Origin: Styela clava
Lineage: Eukaryota
DNA length: 64,000 bases
Direction: 5' to 3'
Assembly: GCF_964204865.1 (NCBI RefSeq)
Contig: NC_135253.1
Location: forward strand, 14,384,001-14,448,000
The position numbers were made by a program, and so were the translations under genes. Positions 8,685 through 58,560 of the stretch are shown here, piece by piece; position 1 is the stretch's first letter, and each line of letters opens with the position of its first letter. The notes under the pieces are model-generated. The model was given only the letters and a program-made list of their open reading frames with translations, ran no database searches and had not been told where the DNA came from.

Positions 8685-11600
8685 TCAATCATTCTTTTGC
8701 TTGTTTGCAAAATGAGCTGCAAGTAATGCCACAGTATTTTTATCGTTGAGAAAATTAAAGTAATCTGTAGTGGCCGAAGTACTAGTATTTAATAAGAAGC
8801 CGAAACTACAAATAGACGTAGTGAAGTATAAAAAACAAATGAATGCATTGACGAGGAATAATCCAATTGTTTCCGCCTTTCTTGGTATTGTACATAACAT
8901 ACATACATTTTCGTGATAAAGAACGTCGCACCTGCAAAATACAAAAATGAACAAGATCGATAATTTTTTGTAGTGTAGAATATTATGCTACATTGAATAA
9001 GAAAAGTGGCGGATTCTTGCTGCAAACCTTGCCAATATCATTAGCAAATTTCAGACAATCTGATCGCACGCAATATTCAAAAGTGGTAATTGCATCAATT
9101 GTTTCACTGTGTAAAAAGCTAATATATACGTGTGCTTTGTTAAAATCAACACTGTATCTTGTACCATTTTTTTTATGGCTAATCGCGCCATCAAAAAAAT
9201 TCATTATTACGGTATTGGAAAAATTGTAGACTTCTCTAATGACAGCCAAACAAACAATTAGTTTCCAGGAAAAACATAGAATCTTATATTTTAAACGGAA
9301 ATGGTTTAAAGTGAATACTCACAGAAAACTTTCCGTATTCCAACCGCTGTTAACCAGATAGACTAGGACAACAATCACTAAGCAGCACGATATTACAGCA
9401 ACTAAGATTCCGATTATTCGACTTATAAAATATTCTTTAACGATAACACTTTTATTGAAGTTATTTTTATGGCACCAATGTCGAAGTAAAGCACTCTTCA
9501 TTGGCAATTCATTGTTTTTCCCAATCGTGTCATACTGCGATATTGCAAGTTGAAAAATCGATGCGACATATGGATGTTGAGAGAAAGATGACAGGTTTTC
9601 GTGACAAAGAGTGGAAAATAAATCTCTATCTGAAATTCCGAGGAAACGTGCCGGTAAGTTCTAAAAACAATGTTACATGATAACGATACTTAATTTCAGA
9701 TATGTAAGAGAAGAGTTGCCTTTAGAAATTGTTGAATATTGAAATACCAACAATCTTTTCAGACAAAGCACTTTTATAAAATGCAAAAAGATCACAATAA
9801 AAAGTATTTTAGTGGTTTTTGAAAACAAAAGAACAAATTAAAAATGAATACTTCATCATTGCAATCTTTCTGGGCTTTGAAATTTTTCGTGCAACATCCA
9901 CAATTTCCCTTCTCTGGATCCGGTTGTTGTGCTCTGTTTTCACTGCTTCTCATCAATCCCACATTTTCGCTGTATGATTCACTGAAGAAATTTGTTTTAA
10001 AACTCATTTTCTTCCAATATGGAAAAACAATAAAACAGAAAAACATCGAATTGTAATGCAAACACACGGACCTCGAAGTGCAACACCTCACAGTAGCGTT
10101 CGCCCCTCTACCTAACATAACTGCTGGTGGTATTCAAAGCAAAGTGCAGAAAACACACACGCGAGCTTCTATTGGGTGACTGTGCATATCGTCACGCTAA
10201 TAGCCGAATTGCGTAAGTCATTTTTGGCGATTTTGAGTTTTTTTTATAAAATAGGTATTTATGTAATGCTGCGCACCTGTCTGTTAACTCAGATTTTATT
10301 TTAAGAATTCCGAAACTCATAAAAATGGAGATTTAGTATGACATGCACATTTGAGCAATTGTTTCGTCATAAAGAATTATCATTGTCGCCGCAGGACTAT
10401 TGTGACGCCGCAACGGCAAAATAACCCCGGCGAAGTATTTTCGAGTTTTTGCATCTCGGATTCTAGCTCAGCGCGTATTAATTTGAATTCATACTACAGT
10501 GTAGGAAGACGTGCACTTGTGATATTCACTGTCCGAGTGCAATTCACCTTGGTTGGCTTTCATATTGAGTGCATTGCTGTTTTATTCTTTATATTTAATC
10601 TTAATCTAATTTCGGGGGGTGTGCAGAACGTGTTATATTGATGAAATATATATTTTTAAACATAAAAAATTATGTAATTGAAACTGATTAGCTATTTTGG
10701 GGATTGGACATTGCAGATAACGAGAATCACATTCGTTTTTGAAATGTGTAGTGTTCAGGACTTCTGCATATAGTGAAGTTGCAAAATTGCGTATGTCCCC
10801 AAGTCATAGACACATTTCTGCCTAAGTCACAGTGCGCCATTATGACGTCACTTAACTGCGTCATACAAATTAACTTAAATCCGGCTACGATCAAAAAATT
10901 GACCATGGCAAATTATTGACTCTCAATGGCACAACAATATCATTAGGAAGATTTTTACGTTTTTCTCTAAACTGCTAAAAATGACTTACGCAATTCGGTT
11001 ATTAGCGTGACGATATTACATTCACTATTTTTATCACAATTTTCAACAACGCCAAATGCATAATTCGAAATAATTATTATTCAATTAATGAAAAAATATT
11101 GATAAAGCGTTCTCTCTAATACTTCATGTCTCTTCGTTGTAAACATCCTCGATCCGTTCAATTTCATCATCAACACGTTTACAATTTAAAATTGTTCGTT
11201 TATAAAAACTATTATCTCTATATTATGTATCAGCATAAAACGAATAATAGTCTTGAGTCTTACTTCATGTAGATTCCTCCGGGAATATTCATCAAATTCT
11301 CATAAACATCTTGTAAAAGTAATTTGACAAACTTCAAATGTCCCATCATCCTTGCACCAACTCTAAAATGCCACCAAGCAGAAGGTAGAGCAAACGCAAA
11401 TGCCTGCAACGTGGATAGAAAAATTAATACACATGATTAAAAAGAAAATACACATAAAAAGAGTTATTGCCATACTCTGCTATCAGAGGCATCCTTAATA
11501 AAAAAAAATACAAGGCACAGAATATATAGATAGGCGGTTTTTTGAGATAAGCAATACCAAAACTGCTTCAATGTCAGCAAAATTGGCCGATAATGATGAT

Positions 11601-12995
11601 TCTGATGACGTTTCAAATTACGTATATATAGCGTAACACGTGTAAATTGCGTTATTTTCTATATCTCACTGTATTTGTAGAGAACTGGGAGTGGAACCAT
11701 TCTCGTAACGTTGAAATCTGGAATTTCAAACATGCCAGTTCCTTACATTCAAATTAAAATAGAAAATTAATTCTTGATCTTTACAATATTATGAAATATT
11801 GGCCAAAGTAACTTTCAAAATTTCTGATTGAATACTAATATCAATGAAATGATGTTCATAATACCCGATGCGATAAAATGAATCGAATAGTACAAATACT
11901 AAATTAGAATCACGAAAAATATAGTTAGAATTTCTCACTTTCCTGGTATTCCATACTATTGTTCATCTTATGATAATAAATAACCACAATTAACTAATAT
12001 ATTGTACCAAACCTCTAAGAGCATGCAGTAAGGAAGCCATTGGATAAATCTTTTGATGAAAGTTGGATTTGATAAAAACATGTTATCAGTTATTTTAAGT
12101 TGATCTTCGAGTATAATACATGATCCAACGTCGTTGGATGTGTTGTTCGATACATGCAAGGTACTGGAAATGAATGAAAAATTGTAGAAATATATGAAAA
12201 TCATAAGTTTCGTAAGTGCCATATTATACTCCCACTAGTTGTTCGTTTAAAAAACATTTGGCTTCATTCATAAGATAAAAGTCATAGATGAGGTAAATGT
12301 GCTTATTAACAACAAGATGATCATCCACGATCTTTTGTACTATTGCTAATTGCTATTATCAATGTATTTACATTGTCAATCGAGAGCAAGTGTCTCATCT
12401 AACGGTATTCGTACAATAAACATAATAAATCGTTACAACCAACGAAGCTTTATTAAAATCACAGTATATACAGAAAATAAAACTTACGTGTTTGAAGATT
12501 CCCAGCAATAAACGTTCGCATATTTTATAAAACTTCCTTTCACGTTATGAGTGTTTGTCACGGGGAAACATGACAACTTTGCACCTGAAAAACATTCGAA
12601 TCAACCTCAAATCACTATGTAAGAATTCAAGTATCATTACAATTTGGTTCGCTCTAAAAGTAATTCATTGTTTTCTTATTTTATTATATACACAATAATA
12701 TTTATTATAGTTTGTTAGAGTTGCATAAAAAAAATTTCATTCCGTTCTGTATTCAAGAACTATTTGAATTGTGTTGGTCTGCTATACTTAAACAGTTGTG
12801 AACCTTACAACATTAGATATATGAATATCCAATTTTACCAGCCACTTCCGAAATTTTCGTTACAATTGCCAGCAGAACCAAAAAATAAACTCCCAAAAAA
12901 TGTAGAAATCGATCAGATGGAAGTTCAATAACAATTTCCTTTTCGTGCTTTTGTGAAGCCTTTTCTAGTCCTAAAAATATTTCTGCATGGCTCAT
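8685..12995 (-). CDS. Pannexin/innexin-family channel paralog A, ~419 aa, 7 coding exons: 12839-12995, 12488-12584, 12013-12163, 11264-11403, 9852-9981, 9323-9660, 8685-8931
   Basis: Exon lengths sum to 1260 nt in one frame with canonical splice sites. Motifs: IELPSDR-TM1, LSCFP...YCWES, FIQWLPY-TM2-LPSAWWHF, GHLKF, TM3-ESFLC...C..CT-TM4, i.e. the four-TM pannexin layout. Confidence 0.88.
10190..11012. mobile_element. Unclassified MITE with ~36-bp TIRs in intron 4 of paralog A
   Basis: CGTCACGCTAATAGCCGAATTGCGTAAGTCATTTTT and its near-perfect reverse complement ending at 11012; ATAT on both flanks. Confidence 0.82.
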
Positions 12996-13634
12996 ATTGT
13001 GGAATAAGTAGATATAATATGTTCCGATATTAAAGAGGCTAAAAAACAGAATAAAATAATCAACATTAATATATTTGTACATAAAAATCAAACATATTTT
13101 TCATTTGCATTAGTTGGTTTATTTTCAGACACAACTCATGATTATTTTTGCATTGTGAGATAAATTTTTCTCCGGCTGTGGTATTGAACATATATTGTGC
13201 AATGTGATCGTTTGTTTGAAATAAATAACAAATTATATAAACAAAAACTGCTTTTTCAGCACTCCAGTACAGTGTTTCTTATATAATCAATTGGTAGTAG
13301 AAAAACACACAGTAATTGTTTACAGCAAGTTTTTTCATTATTTTGGTAAGTTGGCAATCATGAATTATAAAATCCAGCTGTTATATGAAATTGCTTACTG
13401 CAATTTTTACCATGGGCTAACTGATTTTAATAAAATAGTAGATGAAGGAATTAGATTTTCTTAAAGTTGCAATGAATTATATATATGCTGCATACTCAAC
13501 AAAAATTAATTAGGTAATGACAAAAAATTAATGTCTTGTTACGTTAGTATTAATCGTGAATGTCTCCGTTATGAACTCCGAAATAAAATTGAATGTTACG
13601 TTGAACACGGTGACTGAAAATTATGGATACGTTA

Positions 13635-14131: not shown

Positions 14132-17100
14132 TTATGAGTTATTTTTCTCTTTGTCCTGCATTTCACGTAGTGCTGCCAACATCACTAGGCTTCCTCGATT
14201 TTTGATATGTTCAAAAAATAAGCTCGTTTGCCGATTGCGACTTCTTGAAGTAAAATATAAGTGACTTGAAGATATAATCAGATATATAGTAATAATTATG
14301 AAATTAATGACAAGAAACGCCAGCATTTCGGTCTTTCTGTGGAGAGTGCAGACAAGGTGTTCATTTTCATAGTATAAAACATTGCACCTGAAAATATAGT
14401 TTGAAATATATTGATGATGTGAGAGATTACAAATTATATACTAACACACGACAAAAAAATTATTGAAAAACTATAAAACATACACGTATGGATGTATCTA
14501 TGTAGATTTATCTATGTAGCATTAAATTTACAATGTTTTGGTGGAAATTGTACTCATTCCCGTTGCCTATGTTCCGAATGCTCACAATTCTTTATGTTTT
14601 TAATTTCTTGGTTTTTGCGGTTATTGGATTTTAGAACCATGCTCCTCAATGTGTTGTTGAGTGAACCAGATCTTGCTTAGCGCAAACTTAGTACAAAATA
14701 TAAATAAAGCAGTGGAGAAAATCAATATACTTACAGAAAGTTTTCTGATTCCCATATGTCAGATCCCAGAATTTCAAAAACAAAAGCTGTTGCTCTAATT
14801 ATCGCCAATGATATGATAATTGAAAATACGTGTTTCAAGTAATATCTGATAACCAGAAATCGACTGCTGAAATTTTCTTTGTGACACCACTGGTGTAATA
14901 TTGCGTCATCCATTGGATAGACACCTTCTTGGTCTTCAAAGTGTTTTAAGAAAGTCAGTCGAAATATAGAGAGTAGGTATGGATAACATTCCAGGGAAGA
15001 AAAATTCTCGTAACACAGCATTGAAAATAAGTGTCTGTCAAGCATTTTGGATTCATCACGCTGTGTAATTCCTTGTGTCGAATTTATTGATTTCGTTGTT
15101 TCATTTTCGGGATCTTCATGATTAATCTCTTTCTGTTATATATTTTGAAATATTAGATATGTATTCATATCAATTTTGAAACACCATATTAGATTTTGTG
15201 TAGTACAAGAGAGCAATGCTAAAATGAAACTTTTTACTTACAATTCCCCCCAAAATCATATCCAGAATAAAGCTCGAACTGTGGCACAGCTACCGTAACT
15301 TAGCCCACCAGTACTGGGGTACCGGTACCCAGATTGTCCTAGATCAGGGGTGGGCAACCCCTGGCACGCGTGCCAAACTTGGCACGCGAGCTCATTTATT
15401 TGGCACGCGAGGGATTCCTCGAAAGCGAAATCATTAGGCTTCAGATAAAAAGTTTCAAGACTCTGAATTATCTGATGAAACTCGGTGTTCGTTTATTCAT
15501 TATCGTTTGTTAACAATCCGCTATTTATTCAAACTCGTTTTGTCTTTTCATGACATATGGCTGCAAAGAAATACATTATGACGTAACAAATGAGTGAGCT
15601 ATCGTGCAATTTTGCCGAGAAGAGCGCAGCATTCATTTGGCTACATTCTTATGTAATATAGTTCGTCCGTGCCACCCTTTTCGTTCATTTCTGCTCGATT
15701 TATAAAGTTGTAGAGCTCATGTTGGTTAGAGTTACTTGCTAATTTACTGTTATAATTTGATTTCGAAGAAAATATAAGCGATTAGGGAACGGAATACAAG
15801 AGAGAAGTGCAGAAAACAAACTATTGCGCGATTAGTATGCCATTCCCGAAATTTTTCGTGTCTTAAAAACTTTGCAACTGCATTACTCTCCGTGTTTTCA
15901 TCTACATATGCTTGTGAATCTCCGTTCTCAGTTATGATCTTTATTAAGTCTTGTAATAGTAGTAGCCTGAATAGAATAAGAAAAGTAATCAAATCTAGTT
16001 GTGGACTGATATTTTCCCGAATAGCGAATATGTCGGTACATTTTCAAACGGTTTATTATTGTGTGGTTCTGCGATGAAAGTAGCAAAAAATTGTTTTTAA
16101 GTTTGGTCGGCACGCAGTAGCATTTTGTCGTTAAATTCAGCCGATTTTGGCACGCGAGCCAAAAAAGGTTGTCCACCCCTGTCTTAGATGCATGAAAGCA
16201 GGCCCCGTGACAAAGATTGTTCCAGGCTGGATGTGAATCAGAATATTAAATGATTCGAATCACTGCAGTATCAGATCTTCTACAATCTACAGTACCGGTA
16301 GCGTACGCACACTCGCAAAACATTGCGGAACAGTCACGCGGTGTGCAATTTTCATGACGTCATCACACAGAACTTCGGAGTGAAAAACGAATCCAATACA
16401 GCCAAAAGAATATTCTGAAACAAATAAATGTAATAGCCTCCTAGCGACAATAACAATTTTTAAACACTAAAAATTTCAAAGCAATTGGTTGAAGGGGAAG
16501 GTGATTTTAACAACAACATAATAATACTAACTAAACTATGCATGGGTCGACTTCGAGTTTAATAAATGTAAAATATTGTAGAAGTATTCATATAAAATAA
16601 TGTTTCAGCATCTTGAATTCAGCCATTACTCACGTCATTTTCCCGGGTTAAAGTGTGTCCTCTGACCTTCCCCAGTAATTCATTGACTTCATCCCTAATA
16701 CCCGGGGTATCATTGTTAACCAGAACTACTTCGCCGTCTTGATGTCGTGAAGAATGTTCCCAACCGTTAACATGTAGACTACCATCATAGTATTCCCTCC
16801 TATAGATATATAAGAAACTACTTTAGTAAATAGAAGAGGTTTATTGCACACAAAAGGGGGCTGAAATCGTATCGAAAACATTGGTCGTTGCTGCAACAAA
16901 AATTATTTTTTTAACTAATGGGTCATCTGCTCGTATATAGTTTCCTAGAAGGTGATTATACTGTTATGTTTTTAATTTTTTTTAATATTTAGAACTCGGT
17001 TTCAGATCGAATTTAAGTAATTTTAAAAAATGCGTCATCGGATAGATCAGTCCACTGGGCTCAAAAATTCCAAACAAAAACATATCGCGAGACTGCGATA

Positions 17101-20100
17101 GCGTACTTACTTCTTGTGCAATTATTTCAGCGGTTCTGTATTATCTCCTAACTAATTATTGAAAGTTGTTGAAATTGCTCCTAAGGGTGTTACACGGCCC
17201 GTGTACCGATAAAATATTAACTAAATTATTATTAATTTAATAGGCATCACTTTCTATATATAATATAGTAGGGCGGGGAAAGATGGCCCCCCTTATTGAA
17301 AATTATCTATATTTCGAAAACCTTTCTTCGAATATTCCTAAAACTTAGCCAGTACATACATAAAGGGCTAAACTCTTAAGCCACACGCCGGCGTCCGCCG
17401 GTCGCCAACCATCGCAACAGCAGAAACGTTTTTATGCAAAAAAAAATTGAGGGGAAGTTGGACATATGGTCGGATATGACGGACATGTGCTAAAATCGCA
17501 TTAAAATACTGAAAATGCTTTCTGTTTCCTAGCAGAATATCAAACTAAACAATGTATTTGCAATTTTTTTGGCCAATTTGAAAATTTCTCTTATGTCCAT
17601 CTTACCCCATGAATGTTTGAAGTTGTGAGCCCATAGAATCGTCCACGAAAGTATGATAAGACACCCCCTAGGAAAACAGGAAAGAATTTTATTTTGCTTA
17701 CACCCTCACACAAACTCTCAAACATAACACCAAAAAAACTCCTAGGATAGCGTGAAAGCTATCGACATGTACATGCGAAAGAAAATATTTATACAAGAAA
17801 AGCTTCAAGCAGAGCAGTCATCACATTGGAAGGACACAATACGTTTTCCATAAACCCCGGCGCAAATATCGTGAAGCCACTTTTGGCATTTCTGGCACTG
17901 AATCCATCCCTCGTCCTCTTCGTCGTCAAAAAAATTGCCGTTGCAGACAGCGCAGAGGTTGCTCAAACAATTTCTTTCTTGTCTCTCATTCTTACGTTTA
18001 TTTTCTTTTTTCCTCCTAGGAGCTGCAACTTTCTTAGACGAGCTAGATGAAATTATTTCTACAAGCGCTGTAGCCTTCTTCGACGAGCTAGATGGCATTG
18101 TTTCTGCGAGAGCTGACAGTTCGGCTACATATTTCTCACTAGTTAATACTCTAATTCCTGTCTGAATGGCTTTCTTCCTCTGCTTCTTGGCTCTCTGAGT
18201 GGCCACTGGAAGAGGCAAAATATCTTCAAATGATTCATCTGATAAACTGGTGCTATCAGGTTCCCTGCTATTTTCCTGCCTCAAAGAATCACGGACTTTC
18301 TCAGAAGCTAACTGAACTCCTGATGAAGTTCTACTTAAATTCGGTAGAGAGCAGCATGGTTCACCTGTGACACTTTCTACCTCTGTCGTGGTGTTAACCT
18401 CATGAGATGGTACGTCGTAGTCTCTATTCGTTATATTGTCTGACTCACCAGATCTCACTATTGCTGTTGTCTGAGAAGGCGCGAATGCATGCTCTGGAAT
18501 CTGCTCAATATCAAGTGGATACAGGCCGGTAGCACGGAAAGATGTTACTGCGTTGCCGACTGTGGCAATTTTGTAATAAGCCTTGCTGAAGAGTGCAGGG
18601 AAATCAATTCTGGATATCCCTGCTCCGGGGTTGTTTCGGTGATGAACTCGAACTGCTTCTTTGAAATGATCCTTTAGTGGTTTAAAATGTACTTTGTCCA
18701 GAGGTTGTAAATAGTGACTCGTATGAGGCGGCATACTGACTATCTCAACATTGTGGCTTCTAGCATATTCCAATACTTCAAGGCTGTGAGTGTGGGAGTG
18801 ATGCCCATCCACTACAAGAAGTGTTTTATCGCAGTCACTTCTCTTGCTTGTGCAAAAATGTTCCATCCACGCAAGGAATAAATCTTTATTTATGTATCCG
18901 GATTCACTGTACTTCACTATTGAACCAGCAGGTAAGCCACGATCCAGTGCTGGGTTCACTCTCTTTCCTTTATATATAACCATTGGAGGGATATAATCTC
19001 CAATAGCATTCACACCCACAACGATAGTTTGAGACAGCCCACGCTCTCCGGCGGTTATTTGGCTTGATGACTTTGATCCCTTTTCTCCAACAATATTTTT
19101 GACACCAGGAACGAGGCTAAGGCCAGTTTCATCAACGTTATAAATTTTGCTGGGCTGATCGAAAAGACAGAGGTCATTCATGACACTTTCTAACATGTCA
19201 AAATACCTTTGAACGATCGGTTTGTTCAGGTGGATTGCTCTCTGAATAGAAAGTGGCTGAGGTTTTCTTATTGTTATAATATCATTGTGCCGAGCTCTGA
19301 AGCCGGCCCACCAATCTTTACCGGCCATTTCCAGAGACTTTGAAAAGTTGTTTTTGATTCCATTGCGTATAGCAAACTCGTAAGCCAATTGCCTTATGTC
19401 CTTTACTGTTAGTGGAAATCCTCTCCTCTCGAAATCTAGAATATGCTTAACAAGATTTTCTTCTGTATTTCTTGGAAGTATAGAACTAGGACCAAGAATT
19501 TTTGATGCCACCATCTTCTTGACCGAGCTGAACACATGCCTCCGTAGAGTTGTTCTGGGAACGCTATGAGTACGTGCTGCACTCTTCAATCCCTCCCCTT
19601 TTTGGACAGCTTCCACTGCCATTCTCATGACAGATTCTGACCAGGAGCCTCTGTTTGATATTCTTTGGTATTTTCTTGGCATTCTTTTAGATTTCCTTCT
19701 TCCCATGCATTAAAAAATTGCATCTGGAAAAAACATGACAGTACATTGGGGTAAGATGGCCACCTCCCATAATTTGATAAGATTATTGAAATTCTCCCAA
19801 AAGTGTTTTGACAAGTAAAAGCAATTACAAAATAAAAGAGAAGACTTTCAGGTATATTATCACAAAGAAGGGGCTTGAGTGATCAGATTGAATAACAAAA
19901 CCAAAAAACGCAAAAAAATTATTACCCCATAATAACCCCCCTTTTCTACATGATACCTTGCTGAGGGCTGTAGTTAGTTGCTAGCTGGCACCAGTCGCAC
20001 AGTTAGTCCTAAATCATAGTGCATAAGTACAAACTTACCAACAAAGGCGCGATTCCGAGTTCCTTGACTGAAAATGAGCATATAGTGCCTCCAAGAAAAA

Positions 20101-21509
20101 CGTGTTCTTACTAAATGCCCTTTTTTCACCCTTCAAAAATCACAAGCCACGTGGAAAGATACACAACTGACGAACTACGCCAAGCGCTAAACCGAAATGG
20201 CTAGAACGAATTCCCTCCTTAGCAACGAACTCACCAATGGCATTTGTAGAATCAAGCCCCATAAGATGTCGCCAATAGGTCAATTTGAAAAAAAGTGTCC
20301 ATCTAACCCCGTGTGTCTATCTTCCCCCGCCCTACTATACAATATGTCCCCCGTTTTCCTAAAATTATACGATTAGAGGTGTAAACACGTGTGTGTTCCT
20401 GACGCTATAACCCTATAGTCACTTACTTTCCCGGAAATTTTTCTGAAGATCTAGTTCATAAAATTATATATTAATATATTAAAACTCACGAATGGTATAC
20501 TCCTGCAGGAACATCTTTGACTTTCTCATACATTCTTTCAATAAATAGTTTCATAAATTTCAAATGTCCCATCAATCGCCCCCCAACTCTTAAGTGCCAC
20601 CATGCAGAGGGAAGAGAGAGCAAAAACGCCTACAATAAATAAATAAATACTCTAGTGAGGAAGCCATTGCTTTCGTATAAAAACATTTATGAAATATTGT
20701 ACTTTTTAAAAAACGAATCTAGAATTTGTAATTTGGGCTTTAATTGTACGGTCACCGTAATTTGGATACAGTGACACAATGGAATAACTCAAAACCACTC
20801 ATGGCATAACGGTAGCGAGAACGTAAGATATATTTAAAAAACGGTTTTAAGCAGTCTTTGAATTATGCTTATTTATTGTGGCCTAACTGCTAATGGCATT
20901 ACATTTTAGCAGGCAATTGGTGCACATATGAATCATTCAATTGGACGGATGACCAAGCAATAAGTACAATGTTTAGACTACCTGAAAAAGCATTGCATAA
21001 GGCATCCATCTCATCACATTTATTGCTTCATTTGGTTGTTTCAGAAGTTTTCCATCGTTTACATTAAAATCGTTTTCGCACAAGTTGTGGATGTTATTAT
21101 CATGGACATATTTTATCACTGGTGATTCCCAGCAATAAGTTTCACAATATTTGATGAAATCTGAGGAATATCCAGTTTCGTTTTTCACTGGATGACACGT
21201 GATATTTCCGACTGTAAAATTATATATATATATAAATTAAAAGTCGATAGTATCGAAATATTTCAGATTGGAAACAAAATACAACATTTTAAACGCTCAA
21301 AACAGTTTCATATTTCAAGTAGAACTGTAACTCTATAATTATTACTCACCGATCAGTTCAGTCAATTTGACAGCGATTGCTAGAATAATAACCAGGCGAA
21401 CACCAATAAACTGCAATATGCGATCCGGTCCAAGTTCTATTACTGTCTCACTTTCATGCAGTTGAAACGCTTCATCTAAAGCTGTCAAAATCGTATTTTG
21501 ACCTGACAT
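14132..21509 (-). CDS. Pannexin/innexin-family channel paralog B, ~449 aa, 6 coding exons: 21350-21509, 20982-21211, 20490-20629, 16634-16799, 14735-15132, 14132-14387
   Basis: Exons sum to 1350 nt with an open frame and canonical sites. Motifs IELGPDR, ITCHP...YCETYCWES, MRWMPY, LPSAWWH, GHLKF, DRHLFSMLCYENF, ENFLC...VCTLHRK. Intron 3 contains the pogo transposon. Confidence 0.88.
15345..16181 (+). mobile_element. Internally deleted hAT element (Charlie/SPIN-like) in intron 4 of paralog B
   Basis: TIR CAGGGGTGGGCAACC / GGTTGTCCACCCCTG with 8-bp TSD tcctagat/tcttagat. Retains a remnant of the hAT C-terminal dimerisation motif FSSTYACESPFSVMIFIKS (ORF 15892-16077). Confidence 0.88.
17266..20337 (-). 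mobile_element. Full-length pogo-family (Tc1/mariner superfamily) DNA transposon, ~3.07 kb, in intron 3 of paralog B
   Basis: TIRs TAGTAGGGCGGGGAAAGAT / ATCTTCCCCCGCCCTACTA flanked by TA on both sides. An internal GGGGWARGATGGMC-like motif recurs (~17275, 17451, 17593, 19748, 20295). Contains an intact transposase ORF. Confidence 0.92.
17805..19706 (-). CDS. pogo/CENP-B-like DDE transposase, 633 aa, with N-terminal HTH domains and a C-terminal PHD finger
   Basis: HTH_psq-like (AARTHSVPRTTLRR) and CENP-B-type HTH (AGKDWWAGFRARH) regions. Catalytic motifs YNVDETG, LVVDGHHSH, LQPLD (36 residues between 2nd and 3rd Asp). C4HC3 finger CAVC...CQKC...HDIC...CDDC. Confidence 0.93.
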   Translation of the reverse strand: MGRRKSKRMPRKYQRISNRGSWSESVMRMAVEAVQKGEGLKSAARTHSVPRTTLRRHVFSSVKKMVASKILGPSSILPRNTEENLVKHILDFERRGFPLTVKDIRQLAYEFAIRNGIKNNFSKSLEMAGKDWWAGFRARHNDIITIRKPQPLSIQRAIHLNKPIVQRYFDMLESVMNDLCLFDQPSKIYNVDETGLSLVPGVKNIVGEKGSKSSSQITAGERGLSQTIVVGVNAIGDYIPPMVIYKGKRVNPALDRGLPAGSIVKYSESGYINKDLFLAWMEHFCTSKRSDCDKTLLVVDGHHSHTHSLEVLEYARSHNVEIVSMPPHTSHYLQPLDKVHFKPLKDHFKEAVRVHHRNNPGAGISRIDFPALFSKAYYKIATVGNAVTSFRATGLYPLDIEQIPEHAFAPSQTTAIVRSGESDNITNRDYDVPSHEVNTTTEVESVTGEPCCSLPNLSRTSSGVQLASEKVRDSLRQENSREPDSTSLSDESFEDILPLPVATQRAKKQRKKAIQTGIRVLTSEKYVAELSALAETMPSSSSKKATALVEIISSSSSKKVAAPRRKKENKRKNERQERNCLSNLCAVCNGNFFDDEEDEGWIQCQKCQKWLHDICAGVYGKRIVSFQCDDCSA

Positions 21510-35598: not shown

Positions 35599-35692
35599 TG
35601 AACACAGCTTTTACATAACTTATTATTATATTGATAAGCAATTTCATTTGTGTGAAACGCTTTATTGTGATTAAGAAAAGATTAATATAAAT

Positions 35693-45400: not shown

Positions 45401-48400
45401 CCAGAATACCGGATCGGGCAATAGCTTGATCTAAGATTTTTTTGTCACTTCAGAGGAGGTGGTTCTATACTCATACTCTACACTGCTCAAAGTTCTCGGT
45501 TGGTGTATTTCATTTCCAGTTGGCCAATCGTAATCCTTCAATATTTATGTTATAAACGTTTGTATAAACGATCTTCTGCCCACTTTACTACTTTTATTAT
45601 TCCGGAAATACAGTGCCGATGATTCAATCCTCTCCTACTTGCACAATCATTAAGATTATTCTCAGACTTGTGCCATGTCTATATTTACCAAGAACACTCT
45701 TAATGAAAACCGTGTGTTCATACTTGATCGTGGATATATTAAAAATTGACTACTGGAGTCAAAGAATAATTCAGAAACCAATGTGTCATGGAAGCATTCG
45801 ATCGAATGCCCAAGACGAAAGAGAATAGCAACGAAGAAGTAAAGAAAGTGTAAAATACATTAGTTCCTCGTTACATGTTATGTAGATCTTAAGTAATACA
45901 TATATTCTTTAACCTCATACAAGATTTCTGATTTACTTTATTTTTAAATACTTTTATAAAATTTTCTTCTATTCGAGCTCATGCACCCTATATCATTATA
46001 CAGTAATCAGTAATCAGTAGTTTATTTCTCACCATACTTAAAATAGGCACAAACATACAAATTGCAATAAATTAAATTATAAATTGGCCATATTTCAGGG
46101 TGAAGGAGACGCGAGAAACCAATACTGGTTATCGAGCAGCGGCACCTATAAAATAAGTCTAACACTATAATATAAAAAACAAAAACAAAAAAACGAACTA
46201 AGTTTAAATAAATTGAGGAAAAAAATACATAAAATATCTCGAGACGATCTGCTGTAACCAGCAATCGCTCGCTTCAACCAAAGTGACTATAATAGTCACT
46301 TAGGCTTCAACAAAAGAAAAGACAACTCCGAACACCACTGATTCGGTAGCCATGGAGATGGCGTTAGTGGATTGTATCACAACAATACTATTGTGAAGCC
46401 CATTAGCTAACAATGGGCAATAAATGTCAAATTCTGATGGCGCATGGTTATTGGTTACAGTGGAACCCATGGTTTGCTGAGGGCGACAACAGGATCACCA
46501 ACGAATAAACCATACCTTTATGCTAGAAAGGAATTGAGGTACCTGTTAATGAGATCTAGTGATTGGCAGCTGGAGTCAGGGCTTCACATAACGTTACAGG
46601 AAATATAAAATCAGGGAAGACATGAAATACCAAACGAGGCCCTCTTCTGATAGACAATAACGAAGCCCATTAAAAAGCAATGTCATGATTGGATTATAAC
46701 GTGAATTCATTTGCAATATTTAACATGAGACCATTAATTATGTTGCGAAAAGAAAAAATAAATTGACAAATAATGGTCTCCTTTCGAAGTACTGGCATAA
46801 TTTAAATATCCAAACTTAGCAAACGGAGTTACATGTTTACGACAGACTTTTAGTCTGTGGTGAGGATAACTAAACTAAAAAGTCGTTCCAAGCAGATGAA
46901 AAAGCAAAATTAATGATACATTTTAAAACTTTAGCAATGAATTGATATCATACAAATAAAATATTTTTCGTTGTTTTGTAAAGAGTTGACAATTTCTTTT
47001 TCATGCTTCTGAGACGCCTGTTCCAGACCTTGTGTAGCTTCGTAAGGGTTAGACATGATAAACTTTACTTGAATGCAAAATAACAAATCGCCTAAGTTTC
47101 GATTTATATTTCTTTTAAGAAGAATGAGAACCAGAATACCGGATCAGGCAATAGCTTGATCTAAGATTTTTTTGTCACTTCAGAGGAGGTGGTTCTATAC
47201 TCATACTCTACACTGCTCAAAGTTCTCGGTTGGTGTATTTCATTTCCAGTTGGCCAATCGTAATCCTTCAATATTTATGTTATAAACGTTTGTATAAACG
47301 ATCTTCTGCCCACTTTACTACTTTTATTATTCCGGAAATACAGTGCCGATGATTCAATCCTCTCCTACTTGCACAATCATTAAGATTATTCTCAGACTTG
47401 TGCCATGTCTATATTTACCAAGAACACTCTTAATGAAAACCGTGTGTTCATACTTGATCGTGGATATATTAAAAATTGACTACTGGAGTCAAAGAATAAT
47501 TCAGAAACCAATGTGTCATGGAAGCATTCGATCGCATGCCCAAGACGAAAGAGAATAGCAACGAAGAAGTAAAGAAAGTGTAAAATACATTAGTTCCTCG
47601 TTACATGTTATGTAGATCTTAAGTAATACATATATTCTTTAACCTCATACAAGATTTCTGATTTACTTTATTTTTAAATACTTTTATAAAATTTTCTTCT
47701 ATTCGAGCTCATGCACCCTATATTATTATACAGTAATCAGTAATCAGTAGTTTATTTCTCACCATACTTAAAATAGGCACAAACATACAAATTGCAATAA
47801 ATTAAATTATAAATTGGCCATATTTCAGGGTGAAGGAGACGCGAGAAACCAATACTGGTTATCGAGCAGCGGCACCTATAAAATAAGTCTAACACTATAA
47901 TAAAAAAAACAAAAACAAAAAAACGAACTAGGTTTAAATAAATTGAGGAAAAAAATACATAAAATATCTCGAGACGATCTGCTGTAACCAGCAATCGCTC
48001 GCTTCAACCAAAGTGACTATAATAGTCACTTAGGCTTCAACAAAAGAAAAGACAACTCCGAACACCACTGATTCGGTAGCCATGGAGATGGCGTTAGTGG
48101 ATTGTATCACAACAATACTATTGTGAAGCCCATTAGCTAACAATGGGCAATAAATGTCAAATTCTGATGGCGCATGGTTATTGGTTACAGTGGAACCCAT
48201 GGTTTGCTGAGGGCGACAACAGGATCACCAACGAATAAACCATACCTTTATGCTAGAAAGGAATTGAGGTACCTGTTAATGGGATCTAGTGATTGGCAGC
48301 TGGAATCAGGGCTTCACATAACGTTACAGGAAATATAAAATCAGGGAAGACATGAAATATCAAACGAGGCCCTCTCCTGATAGACAAGAACGAAGCCCAT

Positions 48401-50922
48401 TAAAAAGCAATGTCATGATTGGATTATAACGTGAATTCATTTGCAATATTTAACATGAGACCATTAATTATGTTGCGAAAAGAAAAAATAAATTGACAAA
48501 TAATGGTCTCCTTTCGAAGTACTGGCAAAATTTAAATATCCAAACTTAGCAAACGGAGTTACATGTTTACGACAGACTTTTAGTCTGTGGTGAGGATAAC
48601 TAAACTAAAAAGTCGTTCCAAGCAGATGAAAAAGCAAAATGAATGATACATTTTAAAACTTTAGCAATGAATTGATATCATACAAATAAAATATTTTTCG
48701 TTGTTTTGTAAAGAGTTGACAATTTCTTTTTCATGCTTCTGAGACGCCTGTTCCAGACCTTTTGTAGCTTCGTAAGGGTTAGACATGATAAACTTTACTT
48801 GAATGCAAAATAACAAATCGCCTAAGTTTCGATTTATATTTCTTTTAAGAAGAATGAGAACCAGAATACCGGATCAGGCAATAGCTTGATCTAAGATTTT
48901 TTTGTCACTCCAGAGGAGGTGGTTCTATACTCATACTCTACACTGCTCAAAGTTCTCGGTTGGTGTATTTCATTTCCAGTTGGCCAATCGTAATCCTTCA
49001 ATATTTATGTTATAAACGTTTGTATAAACGATCTTCTGCCCACTTTGCTACTTTTATTATTCCGGAAATACAGTGCCGATGATTCAATCCTCTCCTACTT
49101 GCACAATCATTAAGATTATTCCCAGACTTGTGCCATGTCTATATTTACCAAGAACACTCTTAATGAAAACCGTGTGTTCATACTTGATCGTGGATATATT
49201 AAAAATTGACTACTGGAGTCAATGAATAATTCAGAAACCAATGTGTCATGGAAGCATTCGATCGAATGCCCAAGACGAAAGAGAATAGCAACGAAGAAGT
49301 AAAGAAAGTGTAAAATACATTAGTTCCTCGTTACATGTTATGTAGATCTTAAGTAATACATATATTTTTTAACCTCATACAAGATTTCTGATTTACTTTA
49401 TTTTTAAATACTTTTATAAAATTTTCTTCTATTCGAGCTCATGCACCCTATATCATTATACATACGAGGCCCTCTCCTGATAGACAAGAACGAAGCCCAT
49501 TAAAAAGCAATGTCATGATTGGATTATAACGTGAATTCATTTGCAATATTTAACATGAGACCATTAATTATGTTGCAAAAAGAAAAAATAAATTGACAAA
49601 TAATGGTCTCCTTTCGAAGTACTGGCATAATTTAAATATCCAAACTTAGCAAACGGAGTTACATGTTTACGACAGACTTTTAGGCTGTGGTGAGAATAAC
49701 TAAACTAAAAAGTCGTTCCAAGCAGATGAAAAAGCAAAATGAATGATACATTTTAAAACTTTAGCAATGAATTGATATCATACAAACAAAATATTTTTCG
49801 TTGTTTTGTAAAGAGTTGACAATTTCTTTTTCATGCTTCTGAGACGCCTGTTCCAGACCTTGTGTAGCTTCGTAAGGGTTAGACATGATAAACTTTACTT
49901 AAATGCAAAATAACAAATCGCCTAAGTTTCGATTTATATTTCTTTTAAGAAGAATGAGAACCAGAATACCGGATCAGGCAATAGCTTAATCTAAGATTTT
50001 TTTGTCACTTCAGAGGAGGTGGTTCTATACTCATACTCTACACTGCTCAAAGTTCTCGATTGGTGTATTTCATTTCCAGTTGGCCAATCGTAATCCTTCA
50101 ATATTTATGTTATAAACGTTTGTATAAACGATCTTCTGCCCACTTTGCTACTTTTATTATTCCGGAAATACAGTGCCGATGATTCAATCCTCTCCTACTT
50201 GCACAATCATTCAGATTATTCCCAGACTTGTGCCATGTCTATATTTACCAAGAACACTCTTAATGAAAACCGTGTGTTCATACTTGATCGTGGATATATT
50301 TTGTAAAAATTGACTACTGGAGTCAATGAATAATTCAGAAACCAATGTGTCATGGAAGCATTCGATCGAATGCCCAAGACGAAAGAGAATAGCAACGAAG
50401 AAGTAAAGAAAGTGTAAAATACATTAGTTCCTCGTTACATGTTATGTAGATCTTAAGTAATACATATATTCTTTAACCTCATACAAGATTTCTGATTTAC
50501 TTTATTTTTAAATACTTTTATAAAATTTTCTTCTATTCGAGCTCATGCACCCTATATCATTATACATACGAGGCCCTCTCCTGATAGACAAGAACGAAGC
50601 CCATTAAAAAGCAATGTCATGATTGGATTATAACGTGAATTCATTTGCAATATTTAACATGAGACCATTAATTATGTTGCAAAAAGAAAAAATAAATTGA
50701 CAAATAATGGTCTCCTTTCGAAGTACTGGCATAATTTAAATATCCACACTTAGCAAACGGAGTTACATGTTTACGACAGACTTTTAGTCTGTGGTGAGAA
50801 TAACTAAACTTGAAAGTCGTTCCAAGCAGATGAAAAAGCAAAATGAATGATACATTTCAAAACTTTAGCAATGAATTGATATCATACAAATAAAATATTT
50901 TCCGTTGTTTTGTAAAGAGTTG
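42425..50922. repeat. Tandem array of six near-identical units (about 1734, 1099, 1730, 1730, 1100, 1104 bp) containing the first 23 codons and upstream region of paralog E
   Basis: The unit start gacaatttctttttcatgcttctgagacgcc recurs at 42425, 44159, 45258, 46988, 48718 and 49818. Short units share one ~630-bp deletion junction (tcattataca|tacgaggccc). Confidence 0.95.
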
Positions 50923-53900
50923 CAATCGAACTCGGAAATTTGCAAACTTTCAACTTCGATTCAGAAGAATAACTTTGAAAGATTAAAAAGAAAAGGTTTG
51001 ATGGACATAAAATGGCTCCTTGTGTAACACTACAGTCTCGTTACCGTTTGAGGTTTTAAATATTTCATAATAAAGTTTGAAGTCACGTTCGAGCAATAAT
51101 CAACCTAACATTGCATTATTTTTTTTGTTTAAATCTTAAAATTGCCTCAGTTTGCTTAATATCTATACATTCTGTGTATTTGATTTTCAACGGACAATCT
51201 TACAATCAAGAATCATGTCAGAATGTTTATGAAATCCTGCTTAAATTTTTTAGTATTTATATTTTTTTCGACGATAAACGAGAAACTATTTTTGCACAGA
51301 AGCATGTTGATGAATATTATTTGAACTTTGTTATTTATCTATATTCTAAAATCATTCTGATAGAACGAATTGTTTTCTATCCACAAAAAAAAAAAATTAA
51401 ATTGAAAAATATCGATGATGATAAACTTAATTTAGTAAATTGAATCAGTTTTATGCATTAAAATTTCTTTCACAATTACACAGTCTTGTCTGAGCAGGGT
51501 CACTCTCTCTGGACAAGCAAATTCTCAAATTATTGCCAAGCGTTTTTTTGCAGATAGCCTAGCCCTAGATGAGAAATTGCTATCGCACTGTCGAGACAAG
51601 ATTTGAGTAAAAATTGAAAGCAACTAATGGTTAATATACCAATAAAGTGGAAAAATTGAAGTTTGAATCAAAAGTAGATTTGGAATATCAGGAAAATCAA
51701 TTTAAAATTTATATAAAATCCTCTCGATGTTATTTTATTGAATGTCATGGATATTTACTGAAATCTGAACGTTATATTTTGAAATAAATTACATACAATT
51801 CTCTTCCATAGGAATAATCTATGTGAATACTGGTAATGAATATTCAACATACTTTTGACCAACTCCATGTTCCAACCTTTGTTCTCAGCCGGGCAGATTT
51901 TATAAAGTCTATAGATTCTGTCCGAAAGATTTTCAGTTTTCAGACAATCGGCCAATGCATCATCGGGAAGCTTGATTTTCTTGTTATCCTTGTTTATCAC
52001 TATAGGCATGAATTACGGAACCGTAGTTAATATTTGACTTTATGCCGTAAAAAAAGAAATCAGTTGTCTCATGAAAAATTGTCTGGGTCGAAGAATTCCA
52101 AACAGATGCTCACATCAAATATTGGTTCATGATCGCCACCAAGAGTATGCTAAACAGTTTGGATTTATACAAAACAACAGCGTTAAACAACTTTTTTATT
52201 TAACAAACTTTTTATCAGACATGAGGTGGAACTTATTGTTGCAGTTTTGTTATCACTTGTCTGAGTAACTACTGGATAAATATCAAATTTTCAATAATCT
52301 GGCTATTTTATTTTAATACTTATTCACGTGACTTAACTTTTCATCCTTTTTGATGATTTGTTTTGATTCATGGGAACACTAGGTTGACTTTCAACTTTTG
52401 CGTTCATATATTAAAGCATTACAGTTATAATCTGTTATTCGTGTACAAAATACGTAGGATGACTTATATAAGTGGCCTAATATGAATTGATTTATATGAA
52501 AATTTAGAGCTAAGTATAAGAGGAGACGAACCAAAAATGCAATTTTTTAATAGTCAATCATCCTTTTTTGACCAGAGGAATTGTTCTCGTTTCATCCAGT
52601 TGTGCGCAGTGTGGTGGATTTCCAACTGTTGCTGCGCTTAAACAGGGTGAGGAAAACCGAATCATAAATTCATCCCTATTGCTAACTCTAGTGCGCTACC
52701 AATTTTCTGTTCAAGACGAAGCTTAGCGATCATTAGTCCGAAGTATGAGCTAAATGTGAAAATTATTCGGCCTCTAGGGAAGATGGCGATGGGCATATGC
52801 AAAGTATTGCAAACATACTGGTCGTTGTAAATTGAAGTGTTGCGTTAATGAGATTTTTGTTTTAAAATGCGATTTTTTTGTTCCAGTTGCAAGTGTATCT
52901 GTAATGTAAGTGTAACAAATTTCTGTTAAGTATGATTGTATTTAAAAAAACTGGCGGTAGCTTTCATGCGCTTACAACATTTAACTGAATACGCCTCATT
53001 TTTGTAACCCTTTTTAACGTCAATTTCATTCTGATATTTCGCTAGTTACAGGAATAAGATTATATTTTACGCGACTGGTGTTGATAAGTTTGGTAAAATC
53101 TTTGGAAAATACTTTAGTTTTACTTATTATTTTGTAACATGCTACGAAGATCCTAATTTAATTTGTGTTGATTTCTCATTTAGGACATCGAAATTTTATT
53201 TCATATCATTTTATAAAAAGTCAGTCTGCCATTAGTGGGCAAAAAGAAAGGGATAGATAATCTTTACAGATTGCGTGCATATATAAGTCTTATGAATATA
53301 TAATTTAAAAGTTTTACTGTGAACGTAATCTTTGTATCTGATAAAATATGAGATAACCAATTCAGTCTCAATTTCCTACGACTGAGAAAGGTTGCAGTTT
53401 CCTCTCATATTTCCATCCATATTTATGATTTCAAATCCCTCACTGTATTGCGAAAAACTAGTATGGTATCGTGAGGTTTTTGGCTTAGATATAGTAGTTG
53501 ATGTCTATTATTATATACACGACTAGACAGGCTGAATGCCAGTTGTAAAAAGTATTTAAATTTTCAGTTAATAAAGCGTTGATCACCACTTATGAAAAAC
53601 AGATAACGAATACTTCTAAAGATATAAATACTCCTAAAATTAAGTTGTTCTAGTTTGTAAATCTGTACTTCAGGAATTAATTAAATACATTTTCGTTTAC
53701 ATGTCATAAATATTTTTAGATTTAGACCCCCGAACAGGAGGACCACGCTCAGAAGTCTTATAATTCTCGGTCTACTTACAAATAATACAAAACTAACTTA
53801 GAAACTGAAGACTGAGGCAGCTTATGGCAGTGATTATTATTATAGCCTGAAATAATATCCTCTTCCTGTTTTTTAGTATGATTTTTATTCTTAATCTTTT

Positions 53901-54886: not shown

Positions 54887-57800
54887 ATGGCGAGCGCTTC
54901 TGAAGTTGCCCAAGGACTTGAAAATGCTTCTCAGAAACAAGAAAAAGAAATTGTAATCGAACTCGGATCAGATCGAATTTTGCATTACATCGGCGTTTAT
55001 CTTGTACTATTTCTCGCTGCAGTATCTAAGTTATCAGAGGCCATTGGTAGGTGAATGTATGAACATTTTGGGTATTTTGAGTATGATATTTTAAAACGTT
55101 TCTAATGAACTCTGTATCTTCCAGCAATATTACTTGACCTATATTATACAGTTTTGCGGAGTTGTTTATTGTGGACTGTGTTGTCGTTTTGTTTCACAAT
55201 GCCAGAACGAGTTCCCCTTACTTTTGTTTGAAGAAAACTATGCTTGATAAAACATTATTCATTTCATTCTGAAAGGTCCCAATTTATCATGTTACCCTGC
55301 TGGGAATGTAACTGTGGAATCAGATTTCATTTCGTACGCAACATCATATTGTTGGGAATCATCGAATGTGTCATTGTCAGAAACCAACAGCAACGGCAAC
55401 AACAACGCTTGTAATGTGGATACAAACATTTCTTCAGAAAATCTTTCAAAACATCCATCATATCTAAAGACATTTCTCCAATGGATGCCTTATGGGATGA
55501 TAATCGAAGTAGGTGTAGATTTCGCCGCTCTTGGAACTGTTAATTGTTAAAATTTTCCCTGTTTGGGTAATTACCCCTTTCGATGAATTGAAATGAATAA
55601 CTTCAAAAATGTATCAGAAAAGAAGACTCAAATTTACGCGTAATGACTCACATAAACTGTATTCTTTCAAAAAAAAGAACAGTTTTCGATGAAAAAAACA
55701 TAAATATATAAAATCGGCTAAGTATACTTCAGAAAGCTTACTGAAAAATATGCTTCATTCTAATCTTTCTTAAATCATATGGTAGATAGAAATAAATCAT
55801 AGGGAATAACTCACCCAATTGGATATTATGAAGATTCCATGCATTAAATAAATCATAAAACATATTCTAAATTGTGAAATTTTTCTCAGGCTTTTTTTTT
55901 TGCGTTGCCGTCTGTTTGGTGGCATTTCCGTGTCGGTGCTAGATTGATGGGACATTTGAAATTCATGAAAATATTGATAGACGATGTCTATGAATTTGTG
56001 AAGACAAAGAAACGAGGAACATATCGCAAGTAAGTAATATTATTTACAGGCTTGTCCATGGGACAAATTTTTCTGTCCAATTCCAATCCCATAGCATTTA
56101 TGCCTGTTCTATCCCATCTCATGAGATTCCCATTGGAAGAAAATTCAATAAAATATTTTAAATCTAGGTTTAGCGTCTACTAAGTAAGGCTACATGTACG
56201 AAGGGACATGCAAAACAACAAAGTTTACGGTCTTTGTTAACTTTATATTCATAACTATCATACATGTGTCCATCAGCCCCTTCACGAAGTATATTGTTAA
56301 TGCTGAATATGTTTTGCTCTTTATGACTAACAAGAGATCTATGCTCAAATATATGGACACGAAGTCCATCACGAAATGTTTTACCATCATTTCCCCGAAA
56401 ATCATACGGTTTTCGTGTCCCACGTATGCCATGGGATATACAAATGTGTGCTGTCCCATCCCATCTCATGAGACGTTTCCCTTGGACGAGCCTGATTATT
56501 TAAAATTATGCAGGTTTATAATAATTACTTCATAAATTAATCTCGCATTATTGTGTTCTTGAGGCTCTATCAAAATGTTTGATAATAAAATACAGTATTT
56601 CGTGGCTCATTTCTAATTAGACTGCAGAAATCTATCAAATATTACTTTGTTTGCAGTGCAATACTCGCAAGTTTTTTTTTCACAAAATCCTTTGTGGCTT
56701 CTTCGCCAATGACACAAAATTTTTCTCATAAATCCACCCAACAAATATCACACTTTTACTATTTGTCATGACATTCTCTTTAGAGGTTCAACCTATGACA
56801 GTCGGAGCTATTATTTAGATGGATGGAGCAGCTATGATCCACAATACAAACGACAAGGATTAGACTCAGATACTGAATCTGAATCATCGGATCCAGAAGA
56901 TTCGAATCCTTCTCCAAACACTGCAACAGGAATCAGACAAAGGAATGGAAGAAATGTCAATTCTGACAGTGCAGAAGACGCACCGCTCGATTCATCAAAA
57001 AAAGCTGCTGGTCAGTTAGAAGAAGTCTCAAGTCATGCTAATCCCTCAGCTTCAAGGATACAGCAACGCAAAAATACACAGAAGGTCAAAACGAAGAAGG
57101 TAGAAGTATGCGGGTTTCAAATAGAACTATAATAATTTTTAGGTGCTATAATCTTTCTGATTCATTCCTTATTTATTGAAAATCAAACTTCAGCATTATC
57201 ACTGTACTGAAACTAGTAATTGATATATTATAACAATTTTAATTTCTCAGAAAAGCATAGAGGACAGCTGGTACGTTCGATTATTTTTCGGTAACATGCG
57301 CGATAGAAATTTATTTTCTATGCTTTGCTTCGAAAATTTTGCTTCACTCGAGCAATATCCTTACATCTTGTCCGTGTACAAAGTCACCGATATTGAAGAA
57401 GACAAAAAGGATAAAGATTTGATAGGACCGAAGACTCAGTGTATCCTGCGACTTGTGTCAAATCAAAAGAACATGAGTGGTCGTTTCCTAATAAAAGCAT
57501 ATCTTCTTAAACATGTTTTTGGCTTCCTTGTTTCCTTATCTGTACTGGCTGTGACTGCGTGGGTTCTCGTGACAATTGGATCTGATGGATGGACTTCTGA
57601 AAGCTTCCAGTGAGTATAGAATGTAATTATTGTAGTTACTGTGATTTAGGAAGCTTTACTGCCACCACGCAGTACCCGTAGGATCCAAAGTAGCAATTGC
57701 TACTCAGCCATCTATTTACATTTCAGGCCGTTTTGTACTTTGTTACTTTATACGCGATATCCAATTTAGTTGTTTAGTTGCCAATCGTTTCGATCAATCT

Positions 57801-58560
57801 CATACAGTGGATGAATCCTAACTTTATGTGGAAAAGTAGTGAATAAATTACTTTGACCTTGGGGTACCGATCCCCATAGTTGGAAGCTTGTGGAGGTGTT
57901 GAAAAGTTTCACAGAGGGCGAAAAAATCTAATAGCAAAACCTTGTCTCGGTGTCGACTCCTAAAATTACATCCCGGTAACAACTCACAGTTCCGACAGAA
58001 ACACGTATAAGTGAAATTGGTAAAGGCAACGGAAATGTAACTTGGTGCGCACTTTTCCGTGCAAATTTATATTGCCATTAAAAACGAAATTCACTTGAAT
58101 ATAATACTGTACAAAACTGTACCCTACAAAGGTTGCTAACCCTAAAAGTACTCAATTGCTAGAAAGCATTTTACCTTATACGGCCCATCGGGCGTCTATG
58201 CCTTCCAACCAATGGCCGATATAGTGACGTTAATTATAGCTTATTTTATATTTTGGCGTTTTTAGTGTTAAAAGTTGTTTAAATCGTAAATATGATATCT
58301 AATATTATTTTTGTTTTAGGTGTGACATCGCCTATCACGAAGACAAATGCATGATTTGTACTCTGCATCGGAAGAGAGACATGATCGCATTTCTCGTGGT
58401 TAACCTGTTAGTGAACTTCGCATATTTACTTCTCTCTGTTTCCCAATGGATATTCATCCGAAGAAGTGAGAATCGCGCAACTTGTTATTACCTGGAAGAC
58501 ATACGAGATCTCGGCAGTGTTGCGCTGCACCAAAAGAAATGGAAAAAGGGAGGAAACTGA
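54887..58560 (+). CDS. Pannexin/innexin-family paralog F, ~482-484 aa. Exons 54887-55046, 55276-55508, 55890-56029, 56784-57099 (or -57105), 57251-57609, 58320-58560
   Basis: Six canonical exons in one open frame: MASASEVAQGLENASQKQEKEIVIELGSDRILHYIG...LSCYPAGNVTVESDFISYATSYCWES...FLQWMPY...LPSVWWHFRVGARLMGHLKF...DRNLFSMLCFENF...ESFQCDIAYHEDKCMICTLHRK...KKGGN*. Most similar to E. Confidence 0.9.
56047..56494. mobile_element. hAT-type MITE in intron 3 of paralog F
   Basis: TIR CAGGCTTGTCCA / TGGACGAGCCTG, perfect 8-bp TSD ATTATTTA, TCCCAT repeats. Explains the spurious ORFs at 56170-56535. Confidence 0.88.

Follow-up and report, generated by a model that had tools for sequence, protein, structure and literature searches.

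The 64,000-nucleotide stretch of Styela clava DNA analysed here (henceforth the window; NCBI RefSeq assembly GCF_964204865.1, contig NC_135253.1, positions 14,384,001 to 14,448,000) carries six paralogous loci, A to F, which we read as the proximal part of a tandem array of about 160 kb of pannexin/innexin-family genes in this ascidian, coding for channel subunits and subject to ongoing turnover. We put the probability of this reading at roughly 0.9. The loci span positions 8685–58560, the two limits being the stop codons of A and F, and lie in the orientations - - - + - + within AT-rich DNA (G+C 32–40%). A preliminary description made from the bare sequence had proposed these six loci and their arrangement, and both were reproduced by exon families and by splice-aware gene models. 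The window exons are 100% identical to Styela clava RefSeq proteins, in keeping with the invertebrate-chordate host supposed there. The family as such is known and mostly annotated; the novelty seems to be one of scale, with 16 loci in subfamilies of which at least five are old, and with genes still being gained and lost.

All-against-all comparison of open frames across the window found homologous exon families, each present once per locus in the six loci, for the N-terminus and first transmembrane segment (TM1), extracellular loop 1, TM2, a loop, TM3 and TM4. The loop-1 exon carries the motif C...YCWES...C, the TM2 exon AFLFALPSxWWHFRVGARLMGHLKFMK, the TM3 exon DRHLFSMLCFENF... and the TM4 exon CDxxYHxxxCxxCT..., while the cytoplasmic-loop exon is poorly conserved. 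Splice-aware models of the six loci, guided by database proteins, showed the TM2 exon to be exactly 140 nt in all six, and bore out the intron phases given earlier: 1,0,2,0,2 in B and F, 1,0,2,1,2 in D (phase 1 at intron 4) and 1,2,0,2,0,2 in A and E, where an extra phase-2 intron lies in loop 1. RefSeq models exist for five of the six loci, all labelled 'uncharacterized protein'. Our models of A, D and F are residue-for-residue equal to the RefSeq proteins P0001 (LOC120327271), P0056 (LOC144421989) and P0067 (LOC144422261), B matches P0085 of the older assembly (LOC120327270) at 98%, and E is identical to P0083 (LOC144421990) except for a 16-residue skip. For B, C and E, near-identical or identical database proteins stood in for the spliced models in searches and folding. 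Reading frames are clean in A, B and F, D and E are damaged copies, and the frame is broken in the pseudogene C, which agrees with the three intact, two conditionally intact and one frameshifted copies first described.

Family membership, proposed from the outset, was recovered by Pfam, by profile search and by fold. Against a curated cut-off of 25 bits, the Pfam Innexin model (PF00876) scored 43.9 bits for F (P0067), 41.4 for A (P0001), 41.2 for E' (P0068), the paralogue of E outside the window, and 30.0 for D (P0056), and nearly all full-length members lie above the cut-off. Single exons did not identify the family in Pfam, the sole Innexin match being sub-threshold (14.6 bits, F exon 2), and a six-frame genome scan with PF00876 was uninformative, the genes being divided among several exons. 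A profile of ten tunicate family members searched against PDB sequences matched PANX1 chains (E values 2.6e-9 to 1e-5), followed by PANX2 (7e-4), PANX3 (2e-3) and C. elegans INX-6 (0.011), with no LRRC8 chain and nothing else credible in that search. Among 1.84 billion representative proteins, the TM3-exon profile found 54 relatives, and those with a named source are all tunicate (Styela clava, Clavelina lepadiformis, Ciona intestinalis, Oikopleura dioica); a protein search with the family alignment, which scored 8000 word-sharing candidates, returned five proteins.

With 29 family sequences as input, the AlphaFold2 model of F (pLDDT 75.9, pTM 0.71) predicts helices at residues 4–20, 27–53, 114–169, 362–394 and 421–454, that is an N-terminal helix plus four long helices consistent with the four-transmembrane architecture proposed earlier. 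Loop 1 is modelled with a strand and a helix and loop 2 with a hairpin, and residues 201–283 form a disordered loop. With this model as query, the first 40 Foldseek matches were all PANX1, PANX2 or PANX3. VIA-align gave Z scores of 16.3 for PANX2, 16.2 for PANX1 and 15.8 for PANX3, with 19–23% identity over 215–264 residues in alignments spanning residues 15–482, and in a protein atlas F is nearest to chordate pannexin clusters. Loop-1 cysteines C59, C79 and C99 and loop-2 cysteines C404, C413 and C416 are present in 19–25 of the 29 family members and the TM2 proline P138 in 26; C59 and C79 correspond in alignment to the pair of cysteines in PANX1 loop 1, and the CW motif is kept. By these profile and fold matches the genes belong to the innexin/pannexin family, closest to the vertebrate pannexins, and we infer orthology to the pannexin branch. 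Connexins and CALHM were rejected as candidates, neither being listed in Pfam scans of exons and full-length proteins at E values up to 0.1–1.

Glycosylation sequons occur in loop 1 of all five readable window proteins: N113, N120 and N121 in A; N56 and N64 in B; N71, N105, N112 and N124 in D; N67 in E; and N56, N64, N84, N104 and N109 in F. Given N-glycosylation sequons in the extracellular loop 1 of every copy, the proteins most probably act in a single membrane, as pannexin-type channels for release or conductance, and not as gap junctions.

The copy number extends well past the window. In the 377-Mb genome, the TM3- and TM2-exon profiles each recover the same 16 loci, 15 of them in one array of about 160 kb at C4:14.39–14.55 Mb and one on C9. 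Over the 204 kb mapped, the order is A, B, relic exons, C, D, E, F, F2, four units lacking exon 1, a B' fragment, C', D', E' and F'. F2 is a full copy beyond the window, and the models of C', D', E', F' and F2 exactly equal RefSeq proteins. The four exon-1-less units (F3–F6) are tandem F-type repeats of 4820 bp at C4:14468499–14486186, also outside the window; they hold exons 2–6 with a diverged exon 2 (57% identity) and are annotated as a 359-aa protein, LOC144422030. The sole member outside the array, at C9:13751685–13752909, is LOC120346273 (P0014/P0065).

We built a maximum-likelihood tree of 34 family members. All S. clava copies, together with the transcript P0005, form one clade with support 99/99, in which the C9 locus is a long branch. 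This clade stands apart from four Ciona loci, three Clavelina loci, Oikopleura and a separate, well supported clade of eight diverged members (P0022–P0024, P0027, P0028, P0031, P0033 and P0049) from megabase-size contigs (ENA/JGI), which suggests that the family has expanded independently a second time, in another tunicate-like organism. The Clavelina members carry consecutive accession numbers, a hint of tandem arrangement there. Between the S. clava subfamilies, synonymous divergence (dS) is saturated and non-synonymous divergence (dN) is 0.39–0.64. B and C' are separated by a dS of 0.38 with dN/dS of 0.32, and dN/dS lies at 0.27–0.35 for D/D', F/F', F/F2 and B/C'; for E/E' it is 1.6 (12 non-synonymous against 2 synonymous changes). 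Since the S. clava copies fall in a clade of their own, the expansion is, on the evidence of tree and divergences, specific to the Styela side of the ascidians; its subfamilies are old and it is still active. The lineage-specific expansion first suggested for the window is thus upheld, and so is its birth-and-death character, visible in one pseudogene, two copies with damage, remnants of exons and duplicates of very recent origin.

Transcription was assessed over positions 34200–38600 with contigs of four runs, three of them RNA-like and drawn from three studies, the fourth DNA-like. All three RNA-like runs contain the junction 34650>35361 (D intron 5) and the junctions 37068>37517 and 37876(+2)>38263 (two E introns), exactly at the predicted GT..AG sites. 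The DNA-like run is continuous across both E introns, while none of its contigs covers the D intron. Two of the runs show a 3-nt deletion that matches the allele of the older assembly. D-type and E-type genes are transcribed and spliced, so that more than one locus type is expressed.

Turning to the individual loci, gene A (8685..13082, minus strand) is intact and codes for 448 aa (XP_039249659.2) in seven exons at 13082–12839, 12584–12488, 12163–12013, 11403–11264, 9981–9852, 9660–9323 and 8931–8685. Gene B (14132..21509, minus strand) is likewise intact, with six exons (21509–21350, 21211–20982, 20629–20490, 16799–16634, 15132 or 15126–14735, and 14387–14132) coding for 447–449 aa without internal stops. 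Its intron 3 houses a 3.1-kb pogo/Tigger-type DNA transposon (17258..20345, minus strand) with 27-nt terminal inverted repeats and an intact 633-aa transposase open reading frame (17805–19706) that matches Pfam DDE_1, HTH_psq and HTH_Tnp_Tc5 and ends in a C-terminal PHD finger; given the uninterrupted transposase and the terminal repeats, this element may still be active. Between B and C, exon families and weak tblastn matches reveal relic copies of exons 1 and 2 (22515..25173, minus strand), A-like at 22515–23011 and 25099–25173 and B/C-like at 23931–24330, and the window exon-family comparison found no downstream exons beside them.

Gene C (26188..29230, minus strand) has six exons at 29230–29071, 28988–28756, 28510–28371, 27737–27578, 27419–27024 and 26431–26188. 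Compared with its intact paralogue C' (P0003, LOC120325950), which lies 110 kb downstream, exon 5 bears indels of +1 (near 27385), -7 (near 27210) and +1 (near 27116), and reading it through needs three frames. Because all splice sites are kept and identity to C' is 95–99% at the nucleotide level per exon, C with its exon-5 indels is a young pseudogene. Gene D (30893..35598, plus strand; 700 aa, XP_077967764.1) consists of exons 30893–31097, 31902–32161, 32521–32660, 32959–33857, 34290–34650 and 35361–35598. The exon-1 donor, GT in D', is AT here (G to A at 31050), and D is readable only through a cryptic donor at 31098, 48 nt downstream, which the RefSeq model uses and which adds 16 residues after TM1, at the TM1/loop-1 boundary. 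The cytoplasmic loop of D, far longer than in the other paralogues, is a single 899-nt exon (32959–33857) of about 300 serine-, asparagine- and lysine-rich residues that has no Pfam match.

Gene E (36846..42493, minus strand) comprises seven exons (42493–42334, 41994–41970, 39786–39564, 39003–38864, 38553–38265, 37878–37517 and 37068–36846) and yields 473 aa only with an inserted element spliced out. This element of about 2.2 kb (39787..41969) sits within coding exon 2 and has perfect 17-nt terminal inverted repeats, TAGGCTTGCACGTAATT and its complement, and an internal 76-nt tandem repeat at 41522–41665. It is missing from E', whose exon 2 is one 239-nt piece. In-frame removal is possible by use of a GT just within the left flank and an AG in the right repeat, at the cost of three extra residues; the RefSeq model of E (457 aa) omits 16 residues, including the first conserved loop-1 cysteine. 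Upstream, repeat search and exon families show a six-fold tandem amplification of the E 5' end (42424..50960, minus strand), the unit comprising the 5' flank, the start codon and the first 23–29 codons, with periods of about 1100 and 1730 nt and 97–100% identity. Past the shared codons, each extra copy continues into unrelated sequence. Tandem Repeats Finder, with a longest period of 500, is blind to this 1.1–1.7-kb repeat, which was detected by the separate repeat search. Gene F (54887..58560, plus strand) is intact, with 482 aa (XP_077968387.1) in exons 54887–55046, 55276–55508, 55890–56029, 56784–57099, 57251–57609 and 58320–58560. Beyond it, at 63057–63995 on the minus strand, a 312-aa open frame resembling a non-LTR retrotransposon reverse transcriptase runs off towards the window end.

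Several of our results tell against the reading of the window as part of a large pannexin-type array. The PF00876 match is limited to profile positions 5–134 of 333 (TM1–TM2), the TM3–TM4 half being recognisable by fold only; LRRC8 pore domains reach the same Z as pannexins (15–16), at 10–14% identity; each extracellular loop has three conserved cysteines, against the two typical of pannexins and innexins; and the evidence for orthology to the pannexin branch consists of the order of E values and the identity in structural alignments. At 97% likeness, the RNA contigs fail to tell D from D' or E from E'. Finally, dS between the C-D-E-F block and the C'-D'-E'-F' block is only 0.007–0.03, and from this near-identity the second block could be an uncollapsed haplotype.

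On this last account, the second block would be the other haplotype placed in tandem and the true family would number some 8–10 loci. Besides the low dS and a nucleotide identity of 98–99%, the annotation of the older assembly, with one copy per type, and the RNA contigs, which show variants of either block form, speak for it. We nevertheless consider it unlikely. The 204 kb examined contain no runs of N, and the blocks differ structurally, with the transposon only in E, the indels only in C and the donor mutation only in D. Their flanks differ as well (B and relics on one side, a B' fragment on the other), and F2–F6 lie between them. In any case, the haplotype question leaves the six window loci, deeply diverged as they are, untouched.

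Another way to see the array is as a set of mostly decaying, non-functional loci in which one or two members, e.g. A, B or the C9 locus, do the work. The frameshifts of C, the lost donor of D, the transposon in an exon of E, the dN/dS of E/E', the relic exons and the F3–F6 copies without exon 1 all fit such a picture. Against it, dN/dS is about 0.3 across B/C', D/D' and F/F', the old subfamilies keep all family motifs despite saturated dS, frames are clean in A, B, F and the block-2 copies, and data from three studies contain D-type and E-type transcripts with the predicted splicing; general decay appears to us quite improbable. That the genes represent another large-pore four-helix branch (LRRC8-type, CALHM or connexin) is very improbable indeed, for beside the equal LRRC8 fold score, one weak Pannexin_like (LRRC8) match (PF12534, 17 bits, sub-threshold, in the C9 paralogue only) and a connexin-like three-plus-three cysteine pattern stand the Innexin matches of nearly all full-length members, a PDB profile search that matches pannexins and INX-6 only, the higher structural identity to pannexins, and the lack of a C-terminal leucine-rich repeat domain in any member by Pfam, LRRC8 identity being rejected on the Pfam and profile evidence.

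We therefore retain the pannexin/innexin array as the explanation of the window. The array occupies one chromosome-scale contig, with the window as its proximal part. Each gene codes for a membrane subunit of four helices that begins with a short N-terminal helix; the two extracellular loops are rich in cysteine, and the cytoplasmic loop is long and disordered. By homology, several such subunits would combine into a large-pore channel; the oligomeric state of the products, their activity as channels, their glycosylation and their non-junctional role are presumed. The old subfamilies represented in the window (A; B together with C; D; and E and F as sisters) arose after Styela split from the Ciona and Clavelina lineages. 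Turnover still goes on: the C-D-E-F block was duplicated very recently, truncated F copies form a 4.8-kb tandem array, C has freshly become a pseudogene, D and E are freshly damaged, and there are relic exons and transposon insertions. A more speculative proposal, which we hold to be rather doubtful, is that a chordate lineage rebuilt pannexin diversity after the bottleneck proposed for early chordates, the selectively maintained subfamilies being expressed in separate cell types or forming heteromeric channels together, and the third disulfide of each loop allowing gating, or even docking, of a kind not seen in vertebrate pannexins; it would cover both the Styela subfamilies, at least five of them old, and the independent eight-member radiation in another tunicate-like taxon.

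The preliminary description had regarded the cluster as a probably undescribed system. This does not hold, given the RefSeq models and the fact that A and B were already catalogued by Welzel & Schuster (2022, eLife 11:e74422, PMC8769644), who list three S. clava proteins from two genes in their supplementary file 6. Their Tu_Scl_03 (XP_039249659.1, P0055) is gene A, and Tu_Scl_01 and Tu_Scl_02 (XP_039249658.1 and XP_039249657.1) have sequons at N56 and N64 and so are compatible with isoforms of gene B. Our literature search found no relevant paper pairing Styela with pannexin. On the current account of gap-junction evolution, innexin diversity was lost in early chordates and a single glycosylated gene of pannexin type was retained; PMC8769644 gives one innexin each for lancelets, for lampreys and for most tunicates. 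The expectation of few such genes in invertebrate chordates agrees with that survey as a general statement and fails for S. clava with its 16 loci. The S. clava family shows that the published tunicate count falls short in one lineage at least, and that chordates can regain pannexin diversity. With intact, freshly damaged and dead genes side by side, the array offers a compact natural series for the birth and death of large-pore channels; it corrects and extends a known family rather than adding a new kind of system.

Among known systems, the tunicate innexins of PMC8769644 are the same family. The patterns described there, an extracellular glycosylation sequon in every chordate innexin and more than two loop-1 cysteines in tunicates, hold in the window genes, and the difference lies in number: two S. 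clava genes in that catalogue against 16 loci and at least five old subfamilies in the current assembly. The protostome and cnidarian innexins belong to the same Pfam family, and the tunicate proteins have a pre-TM2 motif, F/I-Q-W-L/M-P-Y, which is similar to the YYQWV of innexins. The sequence match to innexins, measured on INX-6, is far weaker than that to pannexins, and the loop-1 sequons argue against docking of the kind that gap-junction-forming innexins perform. Large tandem, lineage-specific innexin families are usual in protostomes and cnidarians. LRRC8, the volume-regulated anion channel family whose members form hetero-oligomers, has a pore domain of equal fold similarity; the tunicate proteins differ in having no leucine-rich repeats, no significant sequence match to LRRC8 and a low structural identity to it.

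The closest likeness is to vertebrate PANX1–3. These give the best profile and fold matches and share with the tunicate proteins the four-helix layout with its N-terminal helix, the loop-1 cysteines in an SC...CW context, the TM2 proline, the loop-2 beta-hairpin and the extracellular sequons; in both cases the genes are chordate and multi-exon. The tunicate proteins do not conserve the position that aligns with W74, the pore tryptophan of PANX1. They further depart from vertebrate pannexins in having a third conserved cysteine in each loop, a cytoplasmic loop that is long and disordered (100–500 residues) and a TM3–TM4 half too diverged for the Pfam model, and, at the level of the genome, in having 16 loci in S. 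clava, 15 of them in tandem, where vertebrates have three dispersed genes.

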